Shown here piece after piece: positions 26,938 to 55,044 of a DNA stretch of 64,000 bases. Made by a program: the position numbers and the translations under genes. The stretch is from the NCBI GenBank assembly GCA_002104945.1, contig MCFH01000018.1, forward strand, positions 310,001-374,000, given 5' to 3'. The notes below the pieces were generated by a model. That model ran no database searches, was not told the origin of the DNA, and was given only the letters and a program-made list of their open reading frames with translations. Source of the stretch: Piromyces finnis finn (lineage: Eukaryota; Fungi; Neocallimastigomycota). How positions within the stretch are numbered: position 1 is the stretch's first letter; every line of letters begins with the position of its first letter.

Positions 26938-27009
26938 TGCCCACTAGCGGGATTGAACCACTGATCTTCGCTTTACGAGAGCGACGCTCTACCACTGAGC
27001 CAAGCGGGC
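26938..27009 (-). tRNA. tRNA-Thr(CGT), intronless
   Basis: Reverse complement GCCCGCT TG GCTC AGTGGTA GAGC G TCGCT CT-CGT-AA AGCGA AGATC AGTGG TTCAATC CCGCT AGTGGGC A folds into a full cloverleaf with A- and B-boxes. Confidence 0.95.
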
Positions 27010-27743
27010 ATTATAATTAATTTCTGATAAATAATAATTATAAATATATTATAAATTTGATATTAGTAGAAAATTTTATTATAAAATAATTATTAAATAA
27101 TTTTATATAGTTTATTATAAAAATATAATTTACATAAAATCAAATATTTTATAAATTTATATATTTGATTGGGTTAAATTATAAAAATAATTTTTAATAT
27201 AAAGAATAATAATATTTTTTAGTAGAAAATAAGACTTAGATTACTAATAATAAGTTAAATTTTAATAATAGTTAATATAATTAATTAGTGAATACATAAT
27301 AATATTTAAAAGACAAAAAATAAGTTTTTATATAATAAAAATTATTGTTAAAAAGAGCGTAAGAACAATAAATAAAAGAAAATATAAAAACGAAATTAAA
27401 CTTGTCTAATTTGTAATTATTGTGTTAATAATAAATAATATTTTATAGAATAAATCTGGTGTTATTATTCTATATAAATATTATTAAAATAATAAAACTA
27501 TTAAAATTATAAAATAACTTAAAATAAATTAATAAAACTAGTAGATATTGTTAAAGCTCGTACAATAGCTGTCGAGATAAAACAATATAAGATAACAGAA
27601 GAAGTAGTTAAAAAGTTGTAATATAACTACCAATCCGTTATCAAGTGGTGGAGAACCTCAGTCGTCCCGTGGGAAAGCCGAAAATTTAAATAATTCCTAT
27701 TAATTAGTATATTTAGTATAATTATCTTATTTATTTACTAAAT

Positions 27744-28598
27744 ATGACTGAAAATAAAAACAATTTTGAAAGAGCCGCTAGTATGGCTAAAGAAATAAGC
27801 CCTCTTGGCAAGAAAGATACTAAGTTCTTCAGATGGAAAATGGAACTTGAAGATATCTTAGAAGACTTAGCTCTTTCTGAAAAAGAAAAGAAGAGAATTG
27901 CTTTGCTTGCTACTACCGGTAACTCAAAGGATCTTTGTAGTGATATTTATTATGAAGATAGATCCCTATCTTATAATGAATTTATCAATAAAATATCTAA
28001 CTTATTTGAGGATGATAAAACCTCTAATAGAAACCTAAATAAGTTAGAAAAAATAAAAGTAAACAAAAGCTCTGTTAGAGAATTTAACCGTTCTTTTAAC
28101 GACCTTTTGAAAGAAATTAAAGAAAGGGACAAGCCTTCTGAAGAAAGACTTGTTTTTCTTTATACAAAAGCTTTTAATAGGAGAACTTCTATATTAAATT
28201 CTCTTATTAACAAACAACCAAAAACTTTAAAGGATGCTATGGTCATTGCTATTAAAGCAGATGAGCTTCTATCTGCTTATGAAAGTGATGATGAATATGT
28301 ACCCAATAAAAGAACTCAAAACAAAAATAATTATTATAAGAGAAAAACAGAAGTTGAAGATAAAACCTCTTATAATAATAACGAAAATAATAGTAGTACT
28401 GATAATGAAAAGACTACTAAAGAAGAAGCTAAAGAATCAGATCTGGATGCTTTGACCAAAAGCTTTGCCCAGATGAAAATTCATATCTGCCACCGTTGTA
28501 ACCAGAAAGGACATGATGCCCGCTTCTGCCCAAACGAAATGACCGATGTGAACAAAATCATAGCTACCCTCCTCAAAACCCAAAACCATTTAAATTAA
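27744..28598 (+). CDS. gag: Element A Gag with CCHC zinc knuckle
   Basis: CHRCNQKGHDARFC near the C-terminus; ends at a TTTAAAT slippery site. Confidence 0.85.
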   Translation: MTENKNNFERAASMAKEISPLGKKDTKFFRWKMELEDILEDLALSEKEKKRIALLATTGNSKDLCSDIYYEDRSLSYNEFINKISNLFEDDKTSNRNLNKLEKIKVNKSSVREFNRSFNDLLKEIKERDKPSEERLVFLYTKAFNRRTSILNSLINKQPKTLKDAMVIAIKADELLSAYESDDEYVPNKRTQNKNNYYKRKTEVEDKTSYNNNENNSSTDNEKTTKEEAKESDLDALTKSFAQMKIHICHRCNQKGHDARFCPNEMTDVNKIIATLLKTQNHLN

Positions 28599-28623
28599 AT
28601 GGGGGAAGTTCTCAATCTTCCCC
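28589..28623 (+). promoter_or_regulatory. Programmed -1 ribosomal frameshift signal, element A
   Basis: Heptamer T TTA AAT, then the gag stop, then stem ggggaag/cttcccc. ORF2 is in the -1 frame. Confidence 0.75.
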
Positions 28624-30586
28624 TTCTAACTCCAAAATTGATAATAACCAAACCCACAACATCAACAACATTAATGAGCAAATCTATGTTGATGATACAC
28701 GTGATTTCCATAAAACAAAAAAATTTCCAAATTCTAAAGAAAAATTCTCTAACCCTTTGGTGGATGATCCAATCAATGAAGATGATAAGGATTACGTTAC
28801 ACGTGATCACGTGACAAATACAGTCGATGATAAGGACATCGAAAACCTTATTTATGCATTCAAGAGAAAAAGTTCTGAAGAAAGTGATGAAAGTGATGAT
28901 GAGGATCACGTGACTCAGTCGAAGAAAAAGAAACTTCGAGAAAATCCATTACCAATACATACAAAGGCCACTCAGATGAAAGAACAGCAAGAAATTCGTA
29001 ATGAGAAAAATTCAAATTTTCATACCACTACTTCCCGCCTAGACATCTTAGACCCCTCGGTAATTGCAGGCAAGAATATTTCCTCTGCTAAGATGAAAAA
29101 TAAAGAAACCAGAAATAAAAGAAGAATTGGTCCAGATATACCAAGTAAACAGGACGAATTAGAAGAAGTTATAGATAGCAAAAAGTCTCCCAAAAGCAAC
29201 TATTATGACTTCCTACGTTCTATTGTCATGTTGGGCAAAAATAAAGAATATAATATTTTTGATGCCCTTAATAATACAAATGCTGGTATCTCTTTTGCAC
29301 AATTGCTTGCAGTCAGTCCTATCATCAGAAGACTTTGTGCCAAAGGTTTAAAGCTTGATCCAAATGATGTTCGGAAAATAAACGCCATTCAAAATATGGA
29401 TCTTAATGATGATGATATTAATTCATTTATTAATATCATTAATGAAAATTATAATAATAAAAATAATGAAAACAATGATGATGCTGATAATGACAATGAT
29501 GATGATATTATCAATATAGCAGATAACGAAATTAATGTCATTAATAAAATCAACATTGCTTCTGTCATTGGCTCAATTGATAATAACATTGTCCGAGTTT
29601 TAGTAGATACTGGTTCTGATGTTAATGTTATTACTAAATCCTTCTTTAATTTAATATCAGCAAATCATAATATTACACATTTTAAGAGAACTTTCTTTAA
29701 ATTAGCTAGCAAACAAGTTATTTCAACAAATCAAGCTGTTAATTTAACTCTTAAATTTGGTGATTTAAAAATCTATGCATTATTCTGGATTCTAGAAGAT
29801 GAAGATTCATGTTATGATATTATATTAGGTCGTCAATCTCAAAAGAATCACCGATTATACATTGATCCTGATGATGACTCTCTTTACATGAAAACTAATT
29901 CATCTCCTATTATGGTTGCTCGTCCCTCAAATTTTAAACAAAATAAAAATAATCTTTCAAATATTTCAATGATTCATTGTTTCAATCCATCAAATATTAA
30001 TGAATCTCAATTTAATTCATTTAATAATAATATCAAAATTCAAAATTTTAATTCGACTTTTAACAATAAAAACAAACTTTTTTATTCAATTAAATTTCGA
30101 CATTTATTCAAATTTAAAAATAAATATTTTTATCCAAAATATCACATTTTTCATTCAAATTTCAGCAAATTTCCAAAAAGAATTAAAAACGATTCACTTA
30201 TTAAATTTTCAATTAATAAGTCAAATCTTGTCGGCCGTGATGAAGCAGAAAAAACGCCAATTATTCACGAAAAATGCCACAAAATCAAGATATATAAAAA
30301 TAAAAGTAAAATTCTAAAATATAATCATTTGAATATTAATATTAACAGGAAATTAAAATCAAGAAAAAAGCGAAATAAACAAAATGATATAATCAAAAAT
30401 TCATCAAATAATTCGTTTAAGAATATATATTTCAGTATAATAAAAAGTGTAAAAGAAAGTATTTCAAATTCAATTATTTTCAATCTAAAAGATTATATCA
30501 AATCAGTAACTTCAATTTTAAAACGACATTATTTCGACATATTAAAATCAAAATTTCATCTATTTTCAAAGTTTAAAGAAAGATAA
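28589..30586 (+). CDS. Element A ORF2 (-1 frame): linker + aspartic protease + ~230-aa Asn/Lys/Phe/Ile-rich extension
   Basis: The frame is open from the slippery site at 28589 through track ORF 28757-30586. Contains VLVDTGSDVNV and CYDIILG. No YxDD, RNase H or DDE motifs. Confidence 0.8.
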   Translation, partial: FKLNGGSSQSSPSNSKIDNNQTHNINNINEQIYVDDTRDFHKTKKFPNSKEKFSNPLVDDPINEDDKDYVTRDHVTNTVDDKDIENLIYAFKRKSSEESDESDDEDHVTQSKKKKLRENPLPIHTKATQMKEQQEIRNEKNSNFHTTTSRLDILDPSVIAGKNISSAKMKNKETRNKRRIGPDIPSKQDELEEVIDSKKSPKSNYYDFLRSIVMLGKNKEYNIFDALNNTNAGISFAQLLAVSPIIRRLCAKGLKLDPNDVRKINAIQNMDLNDDDINSFINIINENYNNKNNENNDDADNDNDDDIINIADNEINVINKINIASVIGSIDNNIVRVLVDTGSDVNVITKSFFNLISANHNITHFKRTFFKLASKQVISTNQAVNLTLKFGDLKIYALFWILEDEDSCYDIILGRQSQKNHRLYIDPDDDSLYMKTNSSPIMVARPSNFKQNKNNLSNISMIHCFNPSNINESQFNSFNNNIKIQNFNSTFNNKNKLFYSIKFRHLFKFKNKYFYPKYHIFHSNFSKFPKRIKNDSLIKFSINKSNLVGRDEAEKTPIIHEKCHKIKIYKNKSKILKYNHLNININRKLKSRKKRNKQNDIIKNSSNNSFKNIYFSIIKSVKESISNSIIFNLKDYIKSVTSILKRHYFDILKSKFHLFSKFKER

Positions 30587-32256
30587 AACCACATTAAACA
30601 TTTATATACAAATAATACGACAATTACATTACAAAAATATATAAAAACACAAAAATATTTACACTACGACATTTAACAAAATTTCACTTCATTTTTTTTA
30701 TTTCTCTTTGAAAAAAAAATTTTATTAATAAAAATTTTCAAATTTTTCATCATTTTTTTTATAAACCTTATTTTATATTATTTTTATCATATATATATAT
30801 ATATAGAAAAAAAAATTTAAATTTTTAAATATTTAGTATAAAAATATCAAAAACTTATATATTTATTATTATTTATGAATATTTTTATCAGCTACCACTA
30901 AGTCGTATCTTAGGGGAGGAAATCTTGATAAATAATAATTATAAATATATTATAAATTTGATATTAGTAGAAAATTTTATTATAAAATAATTATTAAATA
31001 ATTTTATATAGTTTATTATAAAAATATAATTTACATAAAATCAAATATTTTATAAATTTATATATTTGATTGGGTTAAATTATAAAAATAATTTTTAATA
31101 TAAAGAATAATAATATTTTTTAGTAGAAAATAAGAAGACTTAGATTACTAATAATAAGTTAAATTTTAATAATAGTTAATATAATTAATTAGTGAATACA
31201 TAATAATATTTAAAAGACAAAAAATAAGTTTTTATATAATAAAAATTATTGTTAAAAAGAGCGTAAGAACAATAAATAAAAGAAAATATAAAAACGAAAT
31301 TAAACTTGTCTAATTTGTAATTATTGTGTTAATAATAAATAATATTTTATAGAATAAATCTGGTGTTATTATTCTATATAAATATTATTAAAATAATAAA
31401 ACTATTAAAATTATAAAATAACTTAAAATAAATTAATAAAACTAGTAGATATTGTTAAAGCTCGTACAATAGCTGTCGAGATAAAACAATATAAGATAAC
31501 AGAAGAAGTAGTTAAAAAGTTGTAATATAACTACCAATCCGTTATCATTTCTGGTACACCACATTCAGAAAAATGCAATAAATCCATATATTTGGTAAAT
31601 GAAATAACCCTTATAATATATATGGATTTAAATATTTTTATTTAATAAATTTATATAACGATAGTAATAATAAGAATGGTAAATTAAATTAATAACTTAT
31701 AAATAATTTATTAAAGTAAAATAAACTTTTTATAATTTAATATAAGGATGATAAAAATATAATTATATAAGGAAGAGGAAGACGCGTATATATATAAAAA
31801 AAAGAAAAGAAGAGTTTTTAGTTTTTAGTTAGTTTTAGTTAGTTTATATTAGTTATATTATAAATAAAATAAAGATAAGGTGATAATAATAGAAGAATAA
31901 ATAATATTATTGTTAGATTTAGTGAAGGAATTAATAATAATATTAGTTTATTTTCTAAGATTATACCTATTTTTAAAACAAATGATAATATAAAATAATA
32001 ATAAATAATACTTATAAATAATAAAGCTTGTAATAAAAATAATAAAATAATAAACAAAATAATAAAATAATATATAATCAAAAAATATTCATCTAGAATA
32101 TAAATTTGTTATTTATAACTGTTGTAGTGTCCCAAACAATAAAGAAAAAGGTACTTATAATAAAATTCTGTACCAAGTTTTTGGTGGAGAATCCGGGCGT
32201 ACAACAAGCAAATTTATGAAAATAGATGAGTAATAGATAGAGATTATACAAAAAAA

Positions 32257-32296
<40 letters not shown>

Positions 32297-32820
32297 TTTA
32301 TAATAATAATAATAATAATAATAATAAATTAATATATATAATAATAATAATAATAAATTAATATATATAATAATAATAATAATAAATTATATATAACTAT
32401 TTGTAACGAAATATTATAATAATAAACACACACACTCTAATGTATCAAATATATGTATTTTTTTTTTAATAATGTTTATTTATTAAATTTATTATTATAA
32501 TACGACTAACTCGCTAGGTCAGTGTATTATCAAACTAAAGACGAAACAAAAAAAAACTAATTTTTATTAATTATTAATAAAAACACTAAAGAACTATTTT
32601 ATCTTTCTTATTCTCTCTTTTATACATGAAAATTATTTTTTTTTTTTTTAATACAATTTGATAAGTGAATTAATTACTTAATGATTGGTTATAAAAATAT
32701 AATTATGAAATTTTCATTAATCTAACCTTAATGATTTTCTAGTCTAACCCTTATCATTAGATATACCTCATTACAAGCTCCTCCTCTAAATTCGGATTCC
32801 AGACGAATTTATAAGCTAAT

Positions 32821-32865
<45 letters not shown>

Positions 32866-32891
32866 AGGCAGTTGACTTCATATGAGAATTA

Positions 32892-33195
32892 AAAGGTGTG
32901 GTACAATGGTCGAGTAGTTGGCAATGAACTAGAAGGTTGTGGGTTCGAAGTCGGGGTTGGTAGAGTAACTTTGATGTAAGGCGGGTTGGCGCCAAGACTA
33001 AAGTATGTCCAACAAGTACTAGAGGTTTCATAGGCAAGGTTCCAATATGGCCGTTTGATAGTACTTGTTCTTGGTACGCTTGTAAGTCCAGTAAATCCCT
33101 ATGGGAGCTTCGCCAAAACGGTATCGGTTAAGTTTATTCTAAAAATTAATATTCCCTCATTTGTGTCTAAAAATTAATGAAAATTAGTTAATTTT
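32892..33195 (+). ncRNA. Candidate tRNA-derived Pol III unit lying antisense in the 3' UTR of element C
   Basis: A-box TGGTACAATGG (32899) and B-box GGTTCGAAGTC (32942) are 43 bp apart, as in tRNA-Thr. No T4 run until 33192. 11-bp stem 33011-33021/33059-33069. Confidence 0.5.
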
Positions 33196-33204
33196 ATTAT
33201 TATT

Positions 33205-33233
<29 letters not shown>

Positions 33234-33238
<5 letters not shown>

Positions 33239-36200
33239 GGGTCTTGTTGAATTCTCTTAGCTTTGCTGGACAGTTCAGATTTTCTTCGGGTTCCCATGAG
33301 GCTTCTGAAATAGGATATCCTTTCCATTTGATCAAGTACTGAGTTTTGTTATAGCGTCTTCTTTTGTCCAGAATTTCTTCTACTTCGTATTCCTCCTCTT
33401 CGTTTATAATGACAGGTGGTGGAGGTTGAACTTTTCGGTTTGTACTTTTCCCTTCGAAGTAAGGCTCGAGAGATGATTTATGGAATACCGGATCAATCTT
33501 CATGTTACCAGGGAGTTTCAATTTGAATGAGACTTCTGATATTTGTTGTTCAATTTCATAGGGACCGAGTTTCCGAGGGGTGAATTTTTTATTTCCCTTA
33601 ACTAAATTATTATTGATTAACCATACCTTTTCTCCTGGTTTGAATGACGGGCCTGGTTGTCTATGTCTATTGGCGAAATGTTCTTGTTTCTTTTGGGCTT
33701 CCGAAAGGTTTTTCTTGAGGGTGCTGATAATTTCTTTTAATTCTTTTGTGTATTCTTCAGCTCTTGGAACTTCACTTGTTGTTGGAATTGTTGGATTAAA
33801 ATTAGGATGGAAACCATAGTTCAAGAAGAAGGGTGTTTGTTTTGCAGATTCTTGAACTGAATTATTGTAACTAAATTCAGCTAGGCTTAAGTATTCGATC
33901 CAGTTAGTGCCTTTGTAATTTGAGAAGCAGCGTAGATATTGTTCTACAACGGAGTTCACTCTCTCCGTCTGGCCATTGGATTGGTGGTGATAAGCAGAAG
34001 AGTATTTCAAATCAATCTTGAGGGTAGCAAAGAATTTCTTCCAAAACTTTGAAGTGAACTGAGAACCTTGGTCGAGAACAATGTCGGAGGGGCATCCATG
34101 AAGTTTGAAGACGTTGTTAATGAAAGCTTCGGCAGCACGTTCAGCAGTGGGAACTTTTTCAAGAGGGATAAAGTGAGCCATTTTTGTCAATCGATCAATG
34201 ACAACGAAGATACAGGTAAATCCACGAGAAGAGGGGAGGTCAGTGATAAAATCCATAGCAATGGAAGACCAGGGACGTTCACCTAAAGGAAGAGTGGATA
34301 ATAACCCGTAAGGTTTATGTCTAGAGGATTTCGAACGACAGCAGACCTCACAAGAACGGACATAGTCCTTAACATCCTGATACATTTTGGGCCACCAGTA
34401 GTTACGGGAAATCAAGGATAAAGTTTTTGAAATACCAAAATGGCCGGCAGCAGGGGAGTCATGACAAGAAGACAGAATTTCAACTCGGCAATCATTAGGA
34501 ACATAGATTTTATCTTGGAAAAGGAGGACGTTGTTACTAAGTTTGTAGTCAGAAGAACAATTATCATTGAGAAGTTGATTAGAAGTCTCAATGAAGAATT
34601 TGTCAAGTTTACAAGAGAGAGCAATTTTTTCAAGAAGAGAAGAAGGAGTGGATGAAGCAAAGCAGGAGCTGAAATTTTCGGGACGAAAGACAGAGTTATT
34701 AGAATCGGAATTGCAAGAGTGATCAAGATAGTCAGGTCTTCTTGACAAGGCATCGGTTTTCCCGTTCGAGGAGCCAGGGCGATATTCAATGACAAAATCG
34801 AATTCAGCAAGGAAAAGGGACCATCTAATTAATCTCTGAGTCATCTTCTCCGGTTTCTTCTGAAAAAGGAGGTTTCTGTGGTCTGATATAATTTTGAAAG
34901 GATGATTCGCACCTTTCAAAAAATGTCTCCACACTTCTAAGGACGCGACGATAGCCAAAAGTTCTTTATCATAGATAGGGTAGTTCTTCTCCGGGTTTGT
35001 AAGGGATCTAGAAAAGAACGCAACAGGGTGAAGAATATTGTCGGACTTGTTGACTTGAGACAATACAGCACCTATGGCGAAGTTACTTGCATCGGTTTCG
35101 ACAACGAAAGGTAGGTCAACATCAGGATATGCAAGGATAGGCTGACTAATAAAATGCTTAACCAAAGCATCAAAAGCATCTTGAGCGGTATCGTTCCAAA
35201 CGAAGGCGGTGTTCTTCTTGCAAAGTTGGTGGAGTGGGTGAGCAATCTTAGCAAAGCCAGGAATAAATCTACGATAATAGTTGGCTAAGCCTAGGAAAGA
35301 TTGTAGCTCATGGACCGATTTAGGAGTCGGCCATTCCGCAATGGCTTTCACCTTATTAGGGTCCATTCCGATACCAGAGGCAGAGATTCTATGACCAAGG
35401 AAGTCAAGACAAGGAGAGTCGAATAGACATTTTTCAAGTTTAGCGTACAGTCCGGCTTCTTCGAGTCTACGAAGGACTTCATTGACGTGTTCATGATGTT
35501 CGGCTATATTATCAGAAAAAATGATAATATCGTCAATATACGAAAAGACGAATTTACCGATAATGCCTTCAAGAACGTCGTTAATAAAATGTTGGAAGAC
35601 TGCAGGAGCGTTCTTGAGACCGAAAGGCATTACCAGATATTCGAAATGGCCAAATTGACAGGTGAAGGCGGTCTTATATTCATCGCCTTCTTTGATTCTT
35701 ACCAAGTTATAGGCGGATCGAAGATCTAGCTTCGAGAACACCTTAGCTTTTCCTAGATGATCCAACATGTCTTGGATCAATGGGAGAGGGTACGAGTTCC
35801 TAATGGTGATTTCGTTCAAGCGGCGGTAGTCGATACACATACGAAGTTCTCCACTCTTCTTCGGGACAAACAGAACGGGAGCACCAGCTGGCGATTTGGA
35901 TTTGCGGATAAACCCCTTTTTTAAATTTTCATTAATGGTTTCTTCTAATACCTTTGATTCTTTCTCAGTAAGTCGGTAGATTGGACCATAAAACAAGTTG
36001 CTATTTGGTCTCAGGTTGATCTCACAGTCGTACGGGCGATGAGGAGGGAGTTTATCAGCGAGCCTTTCCTCGAACACTTTGGAGTGTTGAGAGTAGTGAA
36101 TTGGAATTTGGGGTGACTCAACTTCAGGTTCTTCTAAACAAGTGAATACATTGAAAGGGTATTCAGGTGTATTTCCAACTGACATTTCGTCCTTCGATTG

Positions 36201-37433
36201 GTCTTCGAGTTCAGAAGTGGTAGAGCTAGCAGATTCTTTCCTTAAGCAATTTTCCTTACAGTATTCAGAATGATAGGAAACGTCCTTACTAGCAAAATTG
36301 ATTGTCGGATTGTGAAGGGCCAGCCAATCAGAGCCAAGAATACAACAGTAAGAAGGCAATTCTACGACGTAAAATTGTAACTGGCATGAGTGATTCATGT
36401 GTTCCACAGTTATAGGCCAAGTCTGGCCGATAATCTTTTGGTGACCTCCGATACCTATAATTTGTGGGCATTTTACTTTGGTAATTATAGGGATCTCATG
36501 GGCCTTAACAAAGGCGTGGTCTATCAAACAGAATTGTGAACCACTATCTAAGAGAACTTTAGTTCCGACAGATTTGTATGGAAGAACAACATCAACATCG
36601 ATAACAGTTTGAGGTAAAGAGGAGTTATCCGAAAGTCGAGTGGATTTTTCTTGTTCATTCAAAACATGGACCCCAGCATTATTAGTATGGTTTTCCTTTT
36701 TGGTTCTAATAGGGCATTCAGATAATCGGTGACCAGGTTTACCACAATATAAGCAGAGATTCTCTTTCATTCGGCGGCTACGTTCTTCACTTGAAATGGG
36801 GCCAAAATTATTTTCCTTCTTGGGCTGAGTGGATTTACTTGTAGATCTTTCTGAGGAGCGGGATTGGAAGCTTTGTTTAGAACGGAAACTTCTATTGGAT
36901 CTTCTGTTTATTTCCTCTTGGTGGCATGCCAATCTACTTCCTATACGACTGGCTATTGTTTGTAAGTTTATCAAGGTAGAAGGGCCAGGAAACATCTGAA
37001 GGATATGGGTGGCGATTCTATCGTCCAACCCATCAACAAAAGCATCCATCTTGGCTTGTTCATTCCAAGTGGATTCATCAGCATAGTAGTTAAATTCCTT
37101 GATATACTCTTGAGTATTGGATAGGCCATGTTGTTTGATCTTCTTGAGCTTTTGGTTGGCAGTATAGACCATATCCTGAAAACCAAAAGCAGCCTTCAGC
37201 TTTCCAACAAAGGCGCCATAATCCTGTAAGCAAGGATCATGGTTGTTAATCAAGGTAGCAGCCCAATTCATTGCATCCCCGTAGAGGCGACTAACGACGT
37301 AGAAGACCTTTTCTCCATCGTCCCTTCCTATTTCAGGATGGATCATAAAGATCATGTCCATTTTGGCTAAGAATCCCTTCAGGTAGCGACGGTTGCCATC
37401 AAAACCGTTCTTCAAATCAGCAGAGTTATCCAT
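33234..37433 (-). CDS. gag-pol: Element C Gag-Pol polyprotein (Gag-CCHC-PR-RT-RNaseH-IN-chromodomain), single 1399-aa ORF
   Basis: [14 protein letters not shown]; LLDSGS; YIDD; VETDASNF; HDSPAAGH...CEVC; [20 protein letters not shown]; [10 protein letters not shown]...YLIKWKGY...SWEPEENL. Confidence 0.95.
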
Positions 37434-37491
37434 AAAAAAAATTAGAAGTAAGCAAATAAACGAGGCACTGAGGTAGCGATCTTTTTCTTAG

Positions 37492-37502
37492 AGTGTTTTT
37501 AT
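37492..37502 (-). promoter_or_regulatory. Self-priming PBS of element C (11 nt), complementary to LTR positions 37678-37688
   Basis: Minus-strand ATAAAAACACT directly follows the 5' LTR. Its exact complement AGTGTTTTTAT lies in the LTR 30 nt downstream of TATAAAA. Confidence 0.8.
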
Positions 37503-43302: not shown

Positions 43303-45221
43303 TAAAAAAAAAAAAATATTTAAAATTGGACTTCAAGGGACGAAGTCCAAACTAAGGCGGGATGTCTTGGTACACCACATTCAGAAAAATGCAATAAATC
43401 CATATATTTGGTAAATGAAATAACCCTTATAATATATATGGATTTAAATATTTTTATTTAATAAATTTATATAACGATAGTAATAATAAGAATGGTAAAT
43501 TAAATTAATAACTTATAAATAATTTATTAAAGTAAAATAAACTTTTTATAATTTAATATAAGGATGATAAAAATATAATTATATAAGGAAGAGAAAGACG
43601 CGTATATATATAAAAAAAAGAAAAGAAGAGTTTTTAGTTTTTAGTTAGTTTTAGTTAGTTTATATTAGTTATATTATAAATAAAATAAAGATAAGGTGAT
43701 AATAATAGAAGAATAAATAATATTATTGTTAGATTTAGTGAAGGAATTAATAATAATATTAGTTTATTTTCTAAGATTATACCTATTTTTAAAACAAATG
43801 ATAATATAAAATAATAATAAATAATACTTATAAATAATAAAGCTTGTAATAAAAATAATAAAATAATAAACAAAATAATAAAATAATATATAATCAAAAA
43901 ATATTCATCTAGAATATAAATTTGTTATTTATAACTGTTGTAGTGTCCCAAACAATAAAGAAAAAGGTACTTATAATAAAATTCTGTACCATTTCTGATA
44001 CAAGATGCATAGAAAAATATAATATTTTAAATATTTTATGAATAATGTCAAGAGTTAGAGTGGATTTAGAACTATAATTAAGTCTACTAGGTTAGGATAG
44101 GCTTAATTATATAGTAAATAATAAATTTTTATAAATAAAAGAGTAATAAATATAGTTTTTTTAAGAAATATTTTATTTAATTTTTATAATATAAGTAAAT
44201 GATAATTATTAATTTTAAATATTGAATTTACTATATAAAAATGAGTATAATAATCTCACAAAGAACTTCTTAAAGTTGTTCTTTGTTCAACTTATTTATA
44301 CTTCATTTTTAATATAATGTTGATATTAATAAAGTATAATAATAATATAATTTAAGTTATACATGTATAATAATATAAATATAAATATTAATAAGATATA
44401 ATAATAATAATAATATAATTTTCTTTAAATATCGATATTAATAAGTTGTTAAAAATAATATTAATAATTATTTAAATGAATCTTATTTTACTAATTGGTT
44501 TGTTTAATATTAATTAATTGTTACACTATTTATCTCCGGATAATAAATAGCTTTCCAATTAATATTTATATTAAATAAACTATTATTAGTAAAATATTAT
44601 TAAATTAATATTTTAATTAATTTAACTAATAATTCAAAATTATGAAATTTCATGAAATGTCAAATTTCATGAATTGTGATTTTGACAAATAATATCTAAT
44701 CCTTTTATAAATTGTATATCAATTACTAATGATAATAATAATTAAACTATATTAGTATAAATTATTATGACGCAAATGTTACACATACATTAGAATAATT
44801 AGTTACACAAGAAAGGAAAAGATATAAAAGAGAGTGTTAAAGCAGAAGATATCAAGAGAGAGAACTTTTCATTTATAAATAATATTTGATATTTTAGTTT
44901 TAAGTATTAGTTTTATTTTATTTTATTTTTATATTAATAGTTTTAGTTTAAGTTAGTTTTAGGTTAATAATTACGTATTTAGTATTTATTATATTTCCTT
45001 CAGTTTAAATATTAGTTATAAAAGAAAAGAATATTTATTGTTTATTTTTACTATTTCAGAAAAGTTATATTTTATCATTAATAATACTTTCATCAACATA
45101 TTTTTATATTTACACATTATATTTAACTATTTATATTTATTCAATAATAACTTTCGATCCTATTAGTATTGAATGTTATTAATGTTATAATCATAATAAT
45201 AATAATAATTAAATAAAGAAT

Positions 45222-45780
45222 TTTTTTTTTTTTTTTTTTTTTTTTAACTTCCGAGTGCATTTCTCCCATCGATCAGAGTTAGCTCCAATGGTGGTTCTTA
45301 GAGAAACGTTGGCTCATTCCTATTGCTAGGTGGTTGTGACCCTCCTGGTCTGTCATACTGTTTCTTCAGCTTCGACGCTCACTTAATCCATGTACATTAG
45401 ATGCATGTCGTTGTACGATATTTCACAACTACAATGCTAAGCCTCTTATAGTCAATTTGATCACGTGTCAACCGCCCCCTAATGTTTACACTTAAATTGA
45501 TTAAGGAATATTATGTGTTTTTGGCATAGCCTAAGTCACCACTTATTAAGTTCTAATTTGGAATGTACCATGTACACTAGACCCTCTCAGGCCGGCTAGA
45601 CGAGTGTTATTATCATAGTAGTAAATTAGAAAGTTCATTTATACTTACCTGAATATCATAACCCAACCCATGGCAAACCCAGTGGGAAAATCCACAGGCA
45701 CTGACATCTGCGGGGTCGAACCAGAAGCCTTATGTATGCTAAGGAAACGCCTTAACAACCAGGATAAAAACTGGAACGAC
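45222..45780 (-). mobile_element. tRNA-Ala(AGC)-derived SINE with poly(A) tail and 12-bp TSD TAAATAAAGAAT
   Basis: Minus-strand head TATCCTGGTTGTTAAGGCGTTTCC-TTAGCAT-ACATAAGGCTTCT-GGTTCGACCCC; T25 on the plus strand at 45221-45245. Left TSD 45210-45221. The right TSD is reconstituted across element E (45781-45787 + 52826-52830). Confidence 0.8.
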
Positions 45781-47061
45781 TAAATAATGTTAAGGAATGA
45801 ACATAAATAGTTGAATTAGCTAGAATTTTAGGAATTAACCTTCAACTATTTATATTCCTTACTAGTGTTTAACTCTATTTTTAAAATATAAAAATTATAA
45901 TATATAATTTTTATACATTTTTCTAGTAATTATTCATATTTTTATTATATAGTTATATTATTTGTATATAGTTATTTAAGACCTTTATTATTAGTATTAG
46001 TATAATTACTTATAATATTTTATACTTATAAATTTTACAAAATTTTATTATTAAAATAGTTATAGGAATTTTATTATTATTTAAGGTTTATTTTATTAAT
46101 TAACTTTATTGTATAATATTTTATAATTTGAAATTATGACATAGAATTTAATTATAATTTTTACTAAAAGAGGCAACTGTTACACACAAAACAGAAGATA
46201 CCTCGACAGAAAAATTATTATTTATGTCTAAAAAAGGGCATAATTAATTGAATAATATAATTTTATTATATGTCATAATTAAATATATAATATATGATAT
46301 GCAAAAATGTTACACATATCATAAATTAAAATTTTATTAATTATAAATTAAAAATTTTTCTATTCAAATATTAAGAGATTATTCATAATATATATTAAGG
46401 ATTTAATTAATATATGTTACAGTGAATGATCCATATATTATGAATGAAATCAATTTAAATCCTTAGCTATCCAAAACCATTAAATTTCAAATAATGGATA
46501 GTTGGAAAAAGTACGAGGATTTTTGAGAAAATTTTTAAAAACTGAAAAATCAAAAAATAAATTAAATGAATAAAAATTAAAATTAAATAAATTTTTATTT
46601 TTATAACTATTCAAGTGTTTTGTGATATCTTATTTGAACCGTAGCATAATTAATGGTGGAGATATCGGGGATAATAATAACATATTGATATCACACTACA
46701 TTTTTATAGTTACTTTTATAATTGTTTTTGTATTATTATTTAATTAAAATAGTTAATAATTCAAAAGAGGGTTATACTAGTATAATAAAAAGTTATATAC
46801 TTCAAGGCACAAATTAAAATAGTTAATAGAGAGAAATTAATATTGTTAATTGGTGCAGTTAAGGAAGTATTTTATATTGGTATTACTAGTTTAACTAAAG
46901 AGAATAATTATTAGTGTTGTTAATTAAATATATTTCAAATATTGTTGTAATTCATTCTTTTAAATTCTTATAAAAGAAAATTATTTTTTTTTAAACTTGT
47001 TTCATTCTTTAATATTATTGTAAAATTGTATTTTTATCTTTATTTAAAACTTGTATATAAA

Positions 47062-47970
47062 ATGAGTACGGGAGCTGATAAATCTATTGACTTTGCTAAA
47101 TTAATGAAGGAATTAAAGCATGTCACTAGATTAACCGAAGATAATTTGGACATTAAGACTTGGTATAGTCAATTAAAGTATTGGACTATGCTTCAAGATG
47201 TTAAAAGTCCAAAAATGGTGTTTCTAGCTTGTTTGTTTACTACTACAGGAACACCAAATGAACTTATTCAAGAGTTGAATCCTAATAAGGACTTCGAAAG
47301 TGATGAAGACAGTGAAGATAGTGATGAAGAAGATGAAGGTAGAGGAAAGAGAAGAGCTCACTACCCTTCCCTTAAAAAGATAGTCACTATGTTAGAAGAA
47401 TTTTATGGAGTAAAGGAAGATCAAATAGAACTTCTCAAGGAGCTTAGGGATATGCGAATCAAAAAGAATGAAAAAGTAAAAGACTTCAACATAAGGTACC
47501 GTTCCTTGTATGTCAAACTAGACAAGAAGCGTAGAAGGAAAGTAGATGTTGAAGATTACTTAGATTCCATTGAGCCTAACTATAAAGCCTGGGAAAATGT
47601 GCGTAGGGAAAAAGAAGTTACCTTAGCAGAAGCCTACAAGCTTGCCGAAGATGGGGACAGACTAAATTTAAGAAATCGTCATAAAGCTAACAATTATGAT
47701 GTATCCACCTCTTCTAACTCTGATAAAAGATATAAAAATAAATATGAAAGAAAAGAAGATAGCTATGAAAGGAACAAGAAGCCAACAATAGCGAATTATG
47801 GTAATGATAAGAAAGATCCTATGAATGAGTTGACGGAGAAAATGAGAAACTTAACTATCAAAACTTGCTACTTTTGCAACGAGAAGGGACACTTTCAATA
47901 TCATTGTCCTAAGCTGAGTGCCATAGTAGAAGAAAACAAACAAAAGGCCAGAAAAGGTCATTTAAATTAG
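47062..47970 (+). CDS. gag: Element E Gag with CCHC zinc knuckle
   Basis: First ATG 47062; CYFCNEKGHFQYHC. HYPSLKKI resembles HYPSLKEI in B Gag. Confidence 0.9.
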   Translation: MSTGADKSIDFAKLMKELKHVTRLTEDNLDIKTWYSQLKYWTMLQDVKSPKMVFLACLFTTTGTPNELIQELNPNKDFESDEDSEDSDEEDEGRGKRRAHYPSLKKIVTMLEEFYGVKEDQIELLKELRDMRIKKNEKVKDFNIRYRSLYVKLDKKRRRKVDVEDYLDSIEPNYKAWENVRREKEVTLAEAYKLAEDGDRLNLRNRHKANNYDVSTSSNSDKRYKNKYERKEDSYERNKKPTIANYGNDKKDPMNELTEKMRNLTIKTCYFCNEKGHFQYHCPKLSAIVEENKQKARKGHLN

Positions 47971-50900
47971 ATAGTGGGAGAAGAAGCACTCCCAGTAATC
48001 CAAAAATAGCTTCACTTAATAACAGTTCAGTTGATAATAATGAGTACTCTGAATATTCTGAGTATTCTGACTTATCAGATAATGAAGAAATATCTTCTAT
48101 TGAAGATAAAATTATTGCTGCAGCTAAAAGAAAAGCTAATGATGAAGAAGACTCTTCCAAGAAAAGAGTACAAAAATCATTAAAAGAAGACCCAAGACCA
48201 ATAGTTACCCCTGCTACTAGGAAGCAACAAGAACGTGAACTCAGTAATGAGAGTTTAGAATCAGGTTCACCATCACAACCCAAGAACCAACTTGACACGT
48301 CTGTTCTGAGTCAACCTAATATTAACAAGGAAAAAGAAAAAAGTAAAAGACTCAGAGAAAAACAAAGAAGTAAACCACCAACCCCCATAAATAAAGACGA
48401 AAGAGAAGAAAACGAAGATATGGAGGTCAGTATTGATACGGAAGATAAAGTAGAAGTAGAAAAAGCTAAAAAGAAAAATACAGATATTCTACCGACGTTA
48501 TTGAAAATGACTAAAGATAAAGAAAAAGATAAAACTAAAGAGGAGAAAGTCACACGTAATATCCAAATGAGAGGTGATACCAGTGATTATGATATTTTTG
48601 AAGATTTAAACACAGCTAAATGTGATATTACTTATGGACAGTTATTTAATGTATGCCCAAAAATAAGAACACAACTTTCCCAAGGACTAAAGTTAGAGAA
48701 AGTACAAAGCAAGGTATCAGGTGCATTAAATAACATAGTAGCTACTACAACCTTATTAAATAATATCTACCATGACTATATAAGTAAGAATAATGAAGCT
48801 TCAGAAGAGGATATAGCAATGGTGGATGCGACTGTGGATGGAATACCAGGAAAACTACTGGTGGATACGTGTAGTAACTTAAATGTTATTACATCTTCTT
48901 TTTACAAAAGACTACCAAAGGAATATGAAGTGGTAGGAATAAGCAAAGGACGTATTCGACTAGCTACTACTGATGAAGAATACTCTGAGGGTACTGTGGT
49001 GCGTATACCAGTTAGAATAGGAGAGGTAGAACTAGTGGTTGACTTCAGAATACTTGAAAAAGAAGAACCGTTCTATGATATGTTAATAAATTATAAAACT
49101 CAAGTAGATAATTTATTATATATAAATCCAGTAACCAAGAGCTTATGTCAAGTGAAAGAAAGAGGTGTAGTAGAAGAAATAGTACCTATCAATAACCAAT
49201 ATTATAATGAAGGAAAATTGGTATGTACTATTAAGAAGATACCAGATGGAGATACTAAAAGCTTGAAGTCTATTGAAGGTTTACCACCTCAGGAGTATAT
49301 ACACAATGAGATATTCTTGAACACCTTACCAAAAGATAAACGGAAAGAAATACTCCGACTTTTGGAAGAAAACTTAGAGATTATTGCGACGTCTTCTGAG
49401 GAATTAACGCCTTCTAAATTATCACCACATAAAATAAATCTAAAGGCTGGTGTAAAACCAGTTAAACAAAGAGCTTATAGGTTAACTAAATTTAAATCAG
49501 ATATACTAAAAGAAGAGTTAACTAAGCTAATAGAAAAAAAGTTAATAGAGCCGTCCTATTCAGAATGGTCCTCCCCTGTAGTTCTGGTTCCAAAACATAA
49601 TGGTAAGTGGAGAATGTGTGTGGACTATAGGAGAGTGAACGACCTCACGGAAAAGGACTCTTATTCACTCCCCTATATTGATGAAATATTTGATAGTCTG
49701 AACGGAGCCAAAATATTCACTACTATGGACTTATATTCAGGTTATCATCAAATTTCTATGCATGAGGAAAGCACTGAGGTTACTAGTTTTACTACCAAGT
49801 TTGGTAACTATCAGTTAAAGGTCATGCCGTTTGGGTTAACTAATGCACCAGCAACTTTTCAGAGGGAAATGAATAAGATATTATTTCCTTTAATAGGAAA
49901 TTGTGTATATAATTTTATTGATGATGTACTCATATATTCCAAGAGTGTGGAAGAACACATGGAACATATTAAGAGAGTATTTGAAATATTGAAAGAAAAT
50001 GAATTAAAAATAAATCTTGAGAAATGTAGTTTTATGAAGGAAGAAGTAAATGTATTAGGTCACAGGTTATCTACTAAAGGTTTGAGTCCTTTGGAAAGTA
50101 AAATAGAAGCCATAAGGAAGTGGGAAGCTCCAGGAAATATTCATGAGTTACGTTCATTTTTGGGTGCAGTAGGATATTATCGAAATTTTATTCCTAATTA
50201 TTCTCAAGTAACCGCGCCCTTATGTGAGTTATTAAAGAAAAATGTACGATATAAATGGGAAGAAAAACATGAAAAAGCATTTAAAGTATTAAAAGAAAAA
50301 CTGATAAACGCTCCCATTTTAAAGTTTCCTGAATTTGATAAGCCTTTTATCATACGTACGGACGCGTCGTATGAAGGAGTGGGTGGTGTTTTATTACAAG
50401 AAGATGAAACTAACAAAATAGAACACCCTGTACATTATATTAGTCGAAGTCTTAGTAAAGCGGAGAAGAACTATGGAATAACAGAGTTAGAAGGTGCTGC
50501 GTTATTCTTTTGCGTGAGTAAGTTAAAACCTTATATTTTAGGAAACCCGTACACTACTATGGTTTATACGGACCATAAACCACTTTTGGGTTTATTTAAA
50601 AATAAGGAACCAAATAGTGCACGTCACAACAGATGGTGTCTTACAGTAAGTCAGTTGGATATTGATATTCAATATGATAAAGGAAAGAATAATGTTATAG
50701 CTGATGCATTATCAAGAATGAAGAATAAAGAGGAGAAAAAGATACTGGTAACAAAAATTAATAAAACTAATAATGAAGAGTTATTAACCAAAGTTATTAA
50801 GGAGTTTATAGCTGAAAAATTTACTACCATAGATGGGAAGGACTATTTCGTAGATGGTAATAACTTACGTCAGCTAATATCTACTGTAGAAGAAAAAGTA

Positions 50901-51938
50901 AAGTTAATATTTCAAGCACATAACGTAGGTCATGAAGGTTATTATAAGACTTATCAAAGGTTAAAGAAAAATTATTATTGGAATGATATGATAGCGGATA
51001 TTAAAAGAATTATTAGCAAGTGTGAGAAGTGTCAAGTAAATAGACCACAACCTTATCCAGAACCAACTGAGGACAAAGCTACTAAAGTGGAAGGACCATT
51101 TGTACATCTAGGTTTGGATATTATTGGGCCATTACCTAAGACAAGAAATAGTAAACAATATATAATAGTCATAGTTGACTATTTTACTAAATGGGTAGAA
51201 GCCGAAGCGGTGGAAACTGTTACTTCTCTGGACGTGATAAAGTTTTTAATAAATGTGTTTGCAAGACATGGGGTACCACAAGTTATTACTACAGATAATG
51301 GAACTCAATTTACCTCAGATATGACAAAGATATTTCTAGACCTATATGACGTATATGTGAAGTTCACAGTTCCCTACCACCCTGAAAGTAATGGATTAAC
51401 AGAAAACCGAAATAAGGAAATTGGGAAACTTTTAAGACTTTTAGGGAAAGAAAGTAAAGACTGGGATGAAGTTCTACCTTCCGCGCTTTGGGCCTTAAGA
51501 ACTACAAAGAATACGGCTACGAAACATTCAAGTTTTGAGCTAGTTTATGGTAGGGAAGACCAACAACCTTTTGATATAGCTGCCCGACCCACTAAAGATC
51601 AAAACAAGAGTTCCGATGAAATTCTTTTGGAAAAGTTTATAAATCACTACCGATGGACCCTAGAAGCTGCTGAAAATGTAAAGACGGCTAATAAATATTG
51701 GTCTATGAGAAGAGAAGAAAAATTAAGTATGAACCAAGCTAAGAAAATAAAAGTAGGTGACCTAGTTTTGGTAAGAAACTTCAGTAGAACAAAATTGGAA
51801 CCTTACTTTGTAGGACCTCTCAAAGTGGTCCAGAAACAGTTCAATACAGTAGTCTTAGCAGACCCAGAAACTGGAGTACTAATGAACAGAAATGTACATT
51901 TCAAAAATGTCGTTAAATATAACTCAGCAACGGAGTAG
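47961..51938 (+). CDS. pol: Element E Pol (PR-RT-RNaseH-IN), reached by -1 frameshift
   Basis: T TTA AAT (47961-47967) + stem tgggag/ctccca. The -1 frame is open into track ORF 48420-51938. VDTCSN; FIDD; RTDASYEG; HHCC; LDIIGP / TDNGTQF / NGLTENRN. Confidence 0.9.
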   Translation, partial: FKLDSGRRSTPSNPKIASLNNSSVDNNEYSEYSEYSDLSDNEEISSIEDKIIAAAKRKANDEEDSSKKRVQKSLKEDPRPIVTPATRKQQERELSNESLESGSPSQPKNQLDTSVLSQPNINKEKEKSKRLREKQRSKPPTPINKDEREENEDMEVSIDTEDKVEVEKAKKKNTDILPTLLKMTKDKEKDKTKEEKVTRNIQMRGDTSDYDIFEDLNTAKCDITYGQLFNVCPKIRTQLSQGLKLEKVQSKVSGALNNIVATTTLLNNIYHDYISKNNEASEEDIAMVDATVDGIPGKLLVDTCSNLNVITSSFYKRLPKEYEVVGISKGRIRLATTDEEYSEGTVVRIPVRIGEVELVVDFRILEKEEPFYDMLINYKTQVDNLLYINPVTKSLCQVKERGVVEEIVPINNQYYNEGKLVCTIKKIPDGDTKSLKSIEGLPPQEYIHNEIFLNTLPKDKRKEILRLLEENLEIIATSSEELTPSKLSPHKINLKAGVKPVKQRAYRLTKFKSDILKEELTKLIEKKLIEPSYSEWSSPVVLVPKHNGKWRMCVDYRRVNDLTEKDSYSLPYIDEIFDSLNGAKIFTTMDLYSGYHQISMHEESTEVTSFTTKFGNYQLKVMPFGLTNAPATFQREMNKILFPLIGNCVYNFIDDVLIYSKSVEEHMEHIKRVFEILKENELKINLEKCSFMKEEVNVLGHRLSTKGLSPLESKIEAIRKWEAPGNIHELRSFLGAVGYYRNFIPNYSQVTAPLCELLKKNVRYKWEEKHEKAFKVLKEKLINAPILKFPEFDKPFIIRTDASYEGVGGVLLQEDETNKIEHPVHYISRSLSKAEKNYGITELEGAALFFCVSKLKPYILGNPYTTMVYTDHKPLLGLFKNKEPNSARHNRWCLTVSQLDIDIQYDKGKNNVIADALSRMKNKEEKKILVTKINKTNNEELLTKVIKEFIAEKFTTIDGKDYFVDGNNLRQLISTVEEKVKLIFQAHNVGHEGYYKTYQRLKKNYYWNDMIADIKRIISKCEKCQVNRPQPYPEPTEDKATKVEGPFVHLGLDIIGPLPKTRNSKQYIIVIVDYFTKWVEAEAVETVTSLDVIKFLINVFARHGVPQVITTDNGTQFTSDMTKIFLDLYDVYVKFTVPYHPESNGLTENRNKEIGKLLRLLGKESKDWDEVLPSALWALRTTKNTATKHSSFELVYGREDQQPFDIAARPTKDQNKSSDEILLEKFINHYRWTLEAAENVKTANKYWSMRREEKLSMNQAKKIKVGDLVLVRNFSRTKLEPYFVGPLKVVQKQFNTVVLADPETGVLMNRNVHFKNVVKYNSATE

Positions 51939-53015
51939 CTTGAGTTTTAACGAAGGGCATTCTGTTAAGGAATGAACATAAATAGTTGAATTAGCTAGAA
52001 TTTTAGGAATTAACCTTCAACTATTTATATTCCTTACTAGTGTTTAACTCTATTTTTAAAATATAAAAATTATAATATATAATTTTTATACATTTTTCTA
52101 GTAATTATTCATATTTTTATTATATAGTTATATTATTTGTATATAGTTATTTAAGACCTTTATTATTAGTATTAGTATAATTACTTATAATATTTTATAC
52201 TTATAAATTTTACAAAATTTTATTATTAAAATAGTTATAGGAATTTTATTATTATTTAAGGTTTATTTTATTAATTAACTTTATTGTATAATATTTTATA
52301 ATTTGAAATTATGACATAGAATTTAATTATAATTTTTACTAAAAGAGGCAACTGTTACACACAAAACAGAAGATACCTCGACAGAAAAATTATTATTTAT
52401 GTCTAAAAAAGGGCATAATTAATTGAATAATATAATTTTATTATATGTCATAATTAAATATATAATATATGATATGCAAAAATGTTACACATATCATAAA
52501 TTAAAATTTTATTAATTATAAATTAAAAATTTTTCTATTCAAATATTAAGAGATTATTCATAATATATATTAAGGATTTAATTAATATATGTTACAGTGA
52601 ATGATCCATATATTATGAATGAAATCAATTTAAATCCTTAGCTATCCAAAACCATTAAATTTCAAATAATGGATAGTTGGAAAAAGTACGAGGATTTTTG
52701 AGAAAATTTTTAAAAACTGAAAAATCAAAAAATAAATTAAATGAATAAAAATTAAAATTAAATAAATTTTTATTTTTATAACTATTCAAGTGTTTTGTGA
52801 TATCTTATTTGAACCGTAGCAATAAAGAATCTTTAAACCAAAATCTATTTAATTATATTATTATAAAATTTATTATTTTTATTATTTATTTTTATTATTA
52901 TAAAATAGAAATAAATACAATATTAACTAATATATTATTCATATATCATTCCCTATTGCTAACGTTCATAATTATATTTTATTTATGGTGTTTTTGAAAT
53001 ATATTGCATCATTTC

Positions 53016-53636
53016 TGATAAATAATAATTATAAATATATTATACATTTGATATTAGTAGAAAATTTTATTATAAAATAATTATTAAATAATTTTATATA
53101 GTTTATTATAAAAATATAATTTACATAAAATCAAATATTTTATAAATTTATATATTTGATTGGGTTAAATTATAAAAATAATTTTTAATATAAAGAATAA
53201 TAATAATTTTTAGTAAAAAATGAGAAGACTTAGATTATTAATAATAAGTTAAATTTTAATAATAGTTAATATAATTAATTAGTGAATACATAATAATATT
53301 TAAAAGACAAAAATAAGTTTTTATATAATAAAAATTATTGTTAAAAAGAGCGTAAGAACAATAAATAAAAGAAAATATAAAAACGAAATTAAACTTGTCT
53401 AATTTGTAATTATTGTGTTAATAATAAATAATATTTTATAGAATAAATCTGGTGTTATTATTCTATATAAATATTATTAAAATAATAAAACTATTAAAAC
53501 TATAAAATAACTTAAAATAAATTAATAAAACTAGTAGATATTGTTAAAGCTCGTACAATAGCTGTCGAGATAAAACAATATAAGATAACAGAAGAAGTAG
53601 TTAAAAAGTTATAATATAACTACCAATCCGTTATCA
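53016..53636 (+). mobile_element. Solo LTR A' (family A), same orientation; TSD TTTC
   Basis: Near-copy of the element A LTR with several substitutions and indels; flanked by TTTC at 53012-53015 and 53637-53640. Confidence 0.9.
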
Positions 53637-54971
53637 TTTCGATAAATAATGAAATTAATAAATATAAAATTATTATTATACCTGATTTTTAAGTTAACCC
53701 TAAAAGTAACTTAAAACAAGTTATAGTTTAATTAAGTACTTTACCAAAATTCTTAAATAAAATTAATCCTAAACACTGCATATATTTTGATTATTGAAAG
53801 AAAATAATAAACTTTAATTAATCGAGATCAAAATATATAACTCTTGTTAAATTAATTGTTAAATTAAATATTTAATAACTTCGTTAGTAAATTACACTTT
53901 AAAAGTAAACAAATATAATAATTCATGTTATAAAATAATATAATTAAACACCTTTATTAAAACATTAAAAATAATTATTACTTTAATTAATTGTAAAATA
54001 AACAACTTTTTATATTCTTTAACTTTTAATTATTTCTTTTATTGTTATTTCTAATTACTTTTATTACTTTTATTGTAAATAGTTATTAATATTATTGTTT
54101 TAATGTAAATAGTTTAAATTTAAAAGAAAATATAAATACATGTAAATATTCTTATTTTAATCATTATTATTATTATTAATAAAGAAATATTATATAGTTA
54201 GATTAATATTTTATAATTTTAATAATCACTTTTATACTTAAATAAATAAAATTTTAAATATTTAAATATTAGAAAAACAAGTGTTTCTAATAAAACAATT
54301 TAGTGTTTTAACAAAACAATTTTATTAATTTTTATAAAAACGATCTTAAATCTTAATCAATATAACTTATATAGTTATAACAAAAGATATAATATAATAA
54401 TCACTTTTTGAAGTAAAATTCAAAATTAAGATTATTACCAAATTATATCAATTTTGATACGAAGAGGATATTATCTTAATTCTATAAATGAATATAGAAA
54501 GTGATAATATTTGTATCTAAAATTTAATAAATAAAAATAAATAAGAAAATAAAAATAGAATAAATGATTTTTATACTTGTTCATTTGCAAGTCTTTGTTA
54601 GTTTAAAATATAAAATTATTTAATTTAATTATAAAGTTTTAATATTTAATAACTCTTGTATTATTAAATATATATATGTTATGGTTTAATACATCTTGAA
54701 TGTATGTAAATATAATCACAACTATTATTTTAATAAAATTTAATATTATTATCTAATTTTACTGGATTATTAGGAACATCTTTTAAAATAAAATAATTCT
54801 ATCACTATTTATACAAAATTATTATTTTAAAGTATAATTATAAACAAATATAAACTATTTAATTTAAAAATAAATAAACAATTAAATAGACAAAAAGTTT
54901 ACATTTATAGTTTTTAATTTAATAATTTTATACATGTTAATTATTTTAATTTTCAACTATCTGTGTTTTAA

Positions 54972-55043
<72 letters not shown>
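54972..55043. repeat. (ATT)n microsatellite
   Basis: About 24 uninterrupted ATT units. Confidence 0.85.

Positions 55044-55044
<1 letters not shown>

Follow-up and report, generated by a model that had tools for sequence, protein, structure and literature searches.

Stacked Ty3/gypsy retrotransposons upstream of a tRNA-Thr gene of Piromyces finnis and their probable serial integration at an RNA polymerase III start site

The DNA described here is a stretch of 64,000 nucleotides (the window) from the genome of the anaerobic gut fungus Piromyces finnis (GenBank assembly GCA_002104945.1, contig MCFH01000018.1, positions 310,001 to 374,000). It contains a stack of long terminal repeat (LTR) retrotransposons, given letters here, that begins a few bases upstream of a tRNA-Thr(CGT) gene. 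Six secure tRNA-directed insertions belonging to five LTR families, together with four nested insertions, were identified across positions 27021-55081. The reading favoured here, with a probability of roughly 0.88, is that a clade of Ty3/gypsy elements in P. finnis integrates at RNA polymerase III (Pol III) start sites and that serial landing at one such site built the stack. It draws on the anatomy of the stack, the association of its families with tRNA genes elsewhere in the genome, target-site duplications (TSDs) that vary between loci, a bias in orientation, and hits on a tRNA-derived short interspersed nuclear element (SINE).

The G+C content of the window is 13-40%, and tRNA-Thr(CGT) is the single tRNA gene within it. 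Element A, the unit closest to this gene, starts at 27025 with the junction TTAA-TTTC-TGATAA. The anatomy CA-TTTC-TG is seen at the three inner junctions of the stack; there are also TTTC junctions on the tRNA side and on the side of unit F, and two junctions with ATTT (Table 1). An earlier note on this DNA had reported the tRNA gene and five TTTC junctions around A, B, a solo LTR D and a solo LTR A', and the results of ARAGORN and Rfam and the junction sequences agree with it on every position. Self-comparison likewise bore out its observation that the LTR bodies of A, B and D have no similarity to one another, yet each is bounded by TTTC, and A, B and A' do share one orientation, all lying on the plus strand and transcribed away from the tRNA gene on the minus strand. 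TTTC has a frequency of only 0.0062 in the window, so that chance is excluded as a source of five identical junction words (p ~1e-9 for four more identical junction 4-mers). The note was too conservative as to extent, ending the array at 53640: the solo LTRs F and H, with ATTT, continue outward to 55081. Units A, B, D, E, F and H all possess TG...CA ends and 4-bp duplications. The array is confirmed as real and is larger than first described.

To place these families in the wider genome, 80 loci were fetched around genomic copies of the LTRs of A, B and F. These loci, which were selected by LTR queries, contain 20 tRNA genes, two of them directly behind another tRNA gene; an LTR terminus lies 13-18 nt upstream of 17 of the 18 others. 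Anticodons with an upstream LTR include those for Thr, Trp, Ser, Cys, Ala, Met, Arg, Gly and Val. The LTRs adjoining tRNA genes belong to families A, B, E, F, G and a K-like family, of which E, G and the K-like family were not among the queries. Where the sense of such an LTR is known (A, B, E and F), it is the 5' LTR that faces the tRNA gene in all cases except one (locus L005). The duplications found across loci were TTTC, ATTT, ACGT, TTTT, TAAA, GTTT, AACA, AAAA, TCAG and others, and this variation from locus to locus indicates that no sequence motif is targeted. Other stacks also repeat a single 4-mer (GTTT, AAAA and TAAA, each twice, and AACA twice at each of two loci); re-use of a site to the exact base is general, with shifts of one or a few bases from one event to the next. 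The proposal in the earlier note that several gypsy families re-use one tRNA-defined site, duplicating the same 4-mer each time, is thus supported by the junctions and by the 80-locus survey. Among these LTR-selected loci, placement relative to Pol III genes is not random, and TTTC is not carried regardless of context.

The spacing of the insertions argues for the start site as the landmark. In tRNA-Ser genes, where a long variable arm shifts the B box, the LTR is still found 14-18 nt upstream, so the ruler runs from the side of the A box and the start site rather than from the B box, as expected for placement by TFIIIB. A further class of target is provided by the SINE, three copies of which have been struck 6-9 bp upstream of their first base: by E in the window (6 bp), by B at locus L040 (7 bp) and by F at locus L068 (~9 bp). 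The first base of a SINE of this kind is the Pol III start site. The duplications therefore lie a few bases upstream of the start, as for Ty3, which cuts at -6/-2 through contacts with TBP and Brf1 (PMC8632968). As three different families have hit SINE copies in this way, these events lend independent support to targeting of Pol III start sites. The 5' LTR of E begins 66 bp from the SINE B box, and the first base of A is also 66 bp from the B box of the tRNA gene; with its start 6 bp upstream of the SINE 5' end, E too obeys Pol III geometry.

If the families integrate at Pol III start sites, the stack could have been assembled in the following manner, in which the tether, the order of events and the mobilisation of A in trans are what we infer. 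The elements would belong to a clade characterised by 4-bp duplications, a Pol frame of -1 with respect to Gag and an integrase (IN) lacking a chromodomain. Their integration complex would most likely be tethered to pre-initiation factors of Pol III (TFIIIB, the tau-A part of TFIIIC, or both), whose distance from the A box is constant. The staggered cut would thereby be made ~12-15 nt before the mature 5' end of the tRNA, a few bases ahead of the point where transcription starts. A newcomer would insert at whichever copy of the last duplication is nearer the tRNA gene and duplicate it again, displacing older copies outward, while the tRNA gene would be left intact and so remain a target. Under serial insertion, the empty site would have read ...ATTATAATTA-ATTT-flank. 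At tRNA-Thr, N may have arrived first; H and F would have followed, both using ATTT, and after them, with the target 1 bp further out at TTTC, A', D, B and A in turn. Being non-autonomous, A would have been mobilised in trans. Later hits within the stack would comprise C and M, which have no Pol III signature, the SINE, by retroposition of the type of long interspersed nuclear elements (LINEs), and E, drawn by the SINE's own Pol III promoter.

The change of word from ATTT to TTTC bears on this order. Copies of F elsewhere begin with TGATAAAT, and at the tRNA-Thr locus the T position is represented by the C of the last TTTC; the first base of F has been absorbed into a 4-bp duplication in the same way at two other loci (L044 and L056). 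The simplest history is one in which the target shifted by 1 bp, H and F having used ATTT and the next arrival TTT plus the first base of F, which was already or later became C. Because the TTTC duplication includes the first base of F, the TTTC series must be younger than F. Both intact elements lie nearest the tRNA gene, with solo, riddled or degraded units beyond them, an arrangement with a chance of ~1 in 15-21. The tRNA-anchored geometry, the position of the TTTC series after F and the proximal location of the intact units together point to layers that age outward. This is the order put forward in the earlier note, and that part of it fits; its argument from divergence does not help, as everything is less than 0.5% diverged. 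The note had regarded A' as visibly the most diverged copy of its family. A' is 98.4-98.7% identical to the LTRs of A, with only one difference private to it and the others common to further genomic copies.

Three other explanations of the array were considered. Elements could home to resident LTR ends, or to the word TTTC/ATTT itself, independently of any tRNA gene. In favour of this, many copies lie exactly 4 bp from the terminus of another LTR, and the later duplication takes in the first base of F; however, many copies adjoin a tRNA gene directly with no other LTR (L002, L021, L023, L036, L057 and L059), the duplications differ from locus to locus, and SINE 5' ends are struck with the same geometry. 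Homing is thereby largely refuted and we regard it as very improbable. Equally hard to credit is that the array arose by unequal or ectopic LTR exchange, or by gene conversion between tRNA stacks, instead of by serial integration. Recombination within LTRs does not place the same 4-bp word between unrelated termini at five junctions in a row, and every unit retains complete TG...CA ends, even though tandem LTR-internal-LTR-internal-LTR arrays of B exist (L044-L046), A and A' are of the same family, and the flanks of one B copy do not match. This last copy, a full-length B beside tRNA-Ser(TGA) (L035/L036, G000:C135:213093-220061), is flanked by TGAA on one side and AAGG on the other, which suggests exchange between copies after insertion.

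A mis-joining of repeats during assembly is the least probable of the three. The array was read from genome assembly sequence alone, in a region of high-copy repeats at 98-100% identity, where such errors may occur; yet mis-joins arise inside shared repeats, not at exact TG/CA termini with a coherent 4-bp duplication, and the same architecture is present at many independent loci. This dependence on the assembly nevertheless counts against integration at Pol III start sites with serial landing, as do four other points. The proportion of 17/18 is not an unbiased genome-wide rate, since the loci were chosen through LTR queries. Mismatched flanks on some elements indicate that recombination also reshapes stacks. 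LTR divergence cannot confirm the order of the layers: the LTR pairs differ by no substitutions and one indel in A, by one substitution in B and by none in C and E, and the terminal branches of A', F and other copies of families A, B and F are at most 0.004. Finally, a tether to Pol III pre-initiation factors, although most likely, is deduced from sequence.

Table 1. Features of the stack at tRNA-Thr(CGT), in window coordinates. PBS, primer-binding site; PR, protease; RT, reverse transcriptase; RH, RNase H
Feature	Positions	Strand	Details
tRNA-Thr(CGT), stack anchor	26938-27009	-	ARAGORN; Rfam RF00005, 66.3 bits; A box TGGCTCAGTGG, B box GGTTCAATCCC; T4 run 3' of gene
Spacer and tRNA-proximal TTTC	27010-27024		11-bp spacer (ATTATAATTAA); TTTC copy at 27021-27024; earlier target ATTT at 27020-27023
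Element A	27025-31547	+	4523 bp, non-autonomous; PBS TGGTGGAGAACC; TSD TTTC; transcribed away from tRNA
Junction A/B	31548-31551		TTATCA-TTTC-TGGTAC
Element B	31552-43991	+	Autonomous Ty3/gypsy; PR-RT-RH-IN; PBS TGGTGGAGAATCC
Element C	32402-37876	-	Chromovirus nested inside B; identical 374-bp LTRs; 5-bp TSD CTATT
Junction B/D	43992-43995		GTACCA-TTTC-TGATAC
D	43996-53011		Solo LTR, ~760 bp (TGATAC...GCATCA), in pieces 43996-44045, 44693-45221 and 52826-53011
M	44046-44687		Solo LTR of another family (TGTCAAG...TGACA), 642 bp; 5-bp TSD AATAA
SINE	45222-45781	-	tRNA-derived, 560 bp including 24-nt poly(A) tail; B box GGTTCGACCCC, A-box-like stretch; 11-bp TSD AAATAAAGAAT
Element E	45788-52821	+	Autonomous gypsy; LTRs identical at 859/859; TSD ATAA; inside the SINE's own duplication
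Junction D/A'	53012-53015		GCATCA-TTTC-TGATAA
A'	53016-53636	+	Solo LTR of family A; same orientation as A; different sub-lineage
Junction A'/F, outermost TTTC	53637-53640		TTATCA-TTTC-GATAAAT; its C falls on the first base of LTR F, which the family's other copies have as T
F	53641-54451	+	Solo LTR, 5' end toward tRNA; TSD ATTT if first base counted as 53640
Junction F/H	54452-54455		ATTT
H	54456-55077		Solo LTR (TGATACGAAG...TTATTTATCA); ATTT on both flanks; repeated in at least 10 other loci
Distal ATTT copy	55078-55081		ATTT
N	55082-55621		Candidate oldest layer; TG...CA ends; last 15 nt equal to D 3' end; AGTT after

Pfam analysis identified the domain order PR-RT-RNaseH-IN in B, E and C, while A encodes only a Gag (Ty3_capsid) and an open reading frame (ORF) with a protease-like domain, RT and IN being absent. 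The N-terminal 376 aa of this protease ORF are 27.5% identical to the part of E Pol that precedes RT. Without RT and IN, A is taken to be a non-autonomous relative that would need mobilisation in trans. Its LTRs (27025-27643 and 30926-31547) differ on self-comparison by one 3-bp indel and no substitutions. A second, diverged A-like non-autonomous family was also observed, at loci L017 and L028/L029, with 83% nucleotide identity and 78% amino acid identity in Gag.

The LTRs of B (31552-32175 and 43368-43991) are 624 bp each and differ by one substitution. Its Gag is encoded at 38195-39229, and its Pol, which is in the -1 frame and overlaps the end of gag, is open between 39190 and 43302. Elsewhere in the genome (L044-L046, G000:C16:6510-19735), B forms a tandem LTR-internal-LTR-internal-LTR array with a spacing of 6.3 kb, which points either to unequal recombination or to insertion into the end of an LTR. 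Element C, nested in B, possesses a single gag-pol ORF (33234-37433) with a C-terminal chromodomain and is not tRNA-directed.

D had been described in the earlier note as a simple solo LTR, and it proved to be an LTR of ~760 bp broken up by M, the SINE and E. With these three removed, D is 759 bp long and is found contiguous, at 89-99.5% identity, in four loci (L013, L039, L048 and L060); because uninterrupted copies exist elsewhere, D is interpreted as a solo LTR split by three later insertions. All available copies of D are solo LTRs, and none of them indicates its orientation. A genome search with 43996-45210 gave copies only of the internal 642-bp repeat M. At least 40 copies of M were scored from 368 candidates, and elsewhere paired copies recur ~6.04 kb apart, for which reason M is considered to be an LTR. 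Its insertions are in AT-rich LTR sequence rather than at tRNA genes. The SINE is represented by at least 40 near-identical (~100%) copies scored from 875 first-look candidates (for example, G000:C167:995389-995950), and the family is evidently very young; its insertions carry 11-bp duplications of the LINE type. Element E encodes its Gag at 47026-47970, with an open -1 frame for Pol at 47913-51938.

Among the outer layers, F is present in at least 40 copies; elsewhere it occurs in pairs 7.56 kb apart and bounds an ~8.4-kb element as its LTR. Beyond H and the distal ATTT lies N, which gave partial matches of 68-87% to repeated LTR-like sequences and is a possible degraded seventh layer. It was also considered as a relative of D, and this was rejected, the match being confined to the terminal 15 nt.

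The termini of the families are alike, with TGATA or TGGTA at the 5' end and TATCA or TACCA at the 3' end. The PBSs of A, B and E (27644-27665, 32176-32200 and 46647-46670) share the start TGGTGGAGA, and that of F is TGGTCCTTCGAACC. The Pol proteins of B and E are 46% identical over 1127 aa, each being 32-33% identical to that of C, and the protease region of A resembles that of E. Judged by these likenesses, the targeting families appear to form one clade despite their unrelated LTR bodies. Homologues of the integrase region of B at 45-77% identity were identified only in metagenome assemblies and in one Orpinomyces model, below which identity dropped to less than 40%. Four metagenome contigs with a B-like Pol (L081-L084) contain stacked gypsy elements but no tRNA gene and are uninformative on targeting elsewhere. 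On each of two of these short ENA contigs (L081 and L083), which come from related organisms, two gypsy elements of the B/E type are neighbours.

Among gypsy elements, targeting of start sites is well documented for Ty3, Tj1, Tca8, Tyl3, Ylt1 and DGLT-A (PMC5911963, PMC5006619), and the insertion positions of Ty3, Tj1, Tca8, Tyl3 and DGLT-A are comparable (PMC5911963, PMC6101501). Targeting of this kind is therefore already known, and the families of Piromyces are further examples of it. Like Ty3 and its yeast analogues (Tj1, Tca8/beta, Tyl3 and Ylt1), they use many tRNA genes and other Pol III units, follow no motif and leave solo LTRs (PMC5911963, PMC8632968, PMC6673722). They differ from the Ty3 group in their strong orientation bias and in that ~10 or more LTR families are piled several layers deep. 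The Pol of B aligns to Ty3 Gag-Pol across RT-RH-IN (E-value 1e-103). In pairwise scores against Ty3 Gag-Pol (PDB 7q5b), however, the non-targeting chromovirus C (516 bits) scores higher than B (351) or E (374), which makes a separate origin of targeting plausible. Ty3 integrase has an extension of ~130 aa with a vestigial chromodomain that contacts Brf1 (PMC8632968), whereas the integrases of B and E stop after an SH3-like C-terminal domain, their Pol ending ~30 aa past its GP(L/F)K motif with no chromo domain detected by Pfam. The duplication of Ty3 is 5 bp (PMC8632968) and that of A, B, E and H is 4 bp, extension to 5 bp failing in each. Ty3 employs a +1 frameshift (PMC5911963), in contrast to the -1 frame of Pol in the Piromyces clade. 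The pairwise scores, the lack of a chromodomain extension, the 4-bp duplication and the -1 frame argue that the clade works like Ty3 and would nevertheless lie outside the Ty3 lineage.

Going by its published description, DGLT-A of Dictyostelium discoideum offers another likeness, being of gypsy type, without a chromodomain, inserted ~15 bp upstream of tRNA genes and present mostly as solo LTRs (PMC6101501, PMC5006619). It is regarded as convergent with Ty3, its tether consisting of RNase H and the IN N-terminal domain, which bind the TFIIIC subunit Tfc4 (PMC6101501, PMC5006619). DGLT-A is a single family with one gag-pol ORF and ~20 mostly degenerate copies, while the Piromyces elements have separate gag and pol frames, comprise many young and apparently intact families, and form deep stacks. 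The Piromyces clade may likewise use a contact other than that of Ty3, as DGLT-A does with Tfc4 (PMC6101501).

A more far-reaching version, to which we give somewhat less than even odds, is that a gypsy clade outside the chromoviruses, restricted to anaerobic gut fungi, evolved the targeting of start sites independently. Its tether would be other than chromodomain-Brf1 and would impose one orientation, and at least 10 LTR families together with non-autonomous parasites would occupy almost every tRNA gene, in stacks that record their history. A full-text literature search of incomplete coverage turned up no account of LTR elements directed to tRNA genes in Neocallimastigomycota; the author of the earlier note had likewise been unaware of such an array in anaerobic fungi.

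Two other features of the window lie outside the stack. Four tandem paralogous gene copies with 72-80% nucleotide identity were identified by self-comparison at 12679-19366, and a tandem repeat with a period of 39 bp, its units ~90-94% identical, is located at 19579-20001.

Position-specific integration at Pol III genes is a textbook case of 'safe-haven' targeting and is known mainly from ascomycete yeasts and Dictyostelium. An early-diverging fungal lineage would here present an extreme form of it, in which young, apparently intact families and a parasite retaining only Gag and protease compete for a few bases, a SINE serves as an extra landing pad, and orientation is nearly fixed. The system is a natural point of comparison for the ways in which integrases recognise the Pol III pre-initiation complex, and may represent a third solution reached independently, besides TFIIIB for Ty3 and TFIIIC for DGLT-A. 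From the stacks an ordered record of transposon activity could be read, for the dating of bursts and the comparison of isolates. They account for a good part of the repeat structure of the genome and are to be expected when assemblies of anaerobic fungi are annotated.

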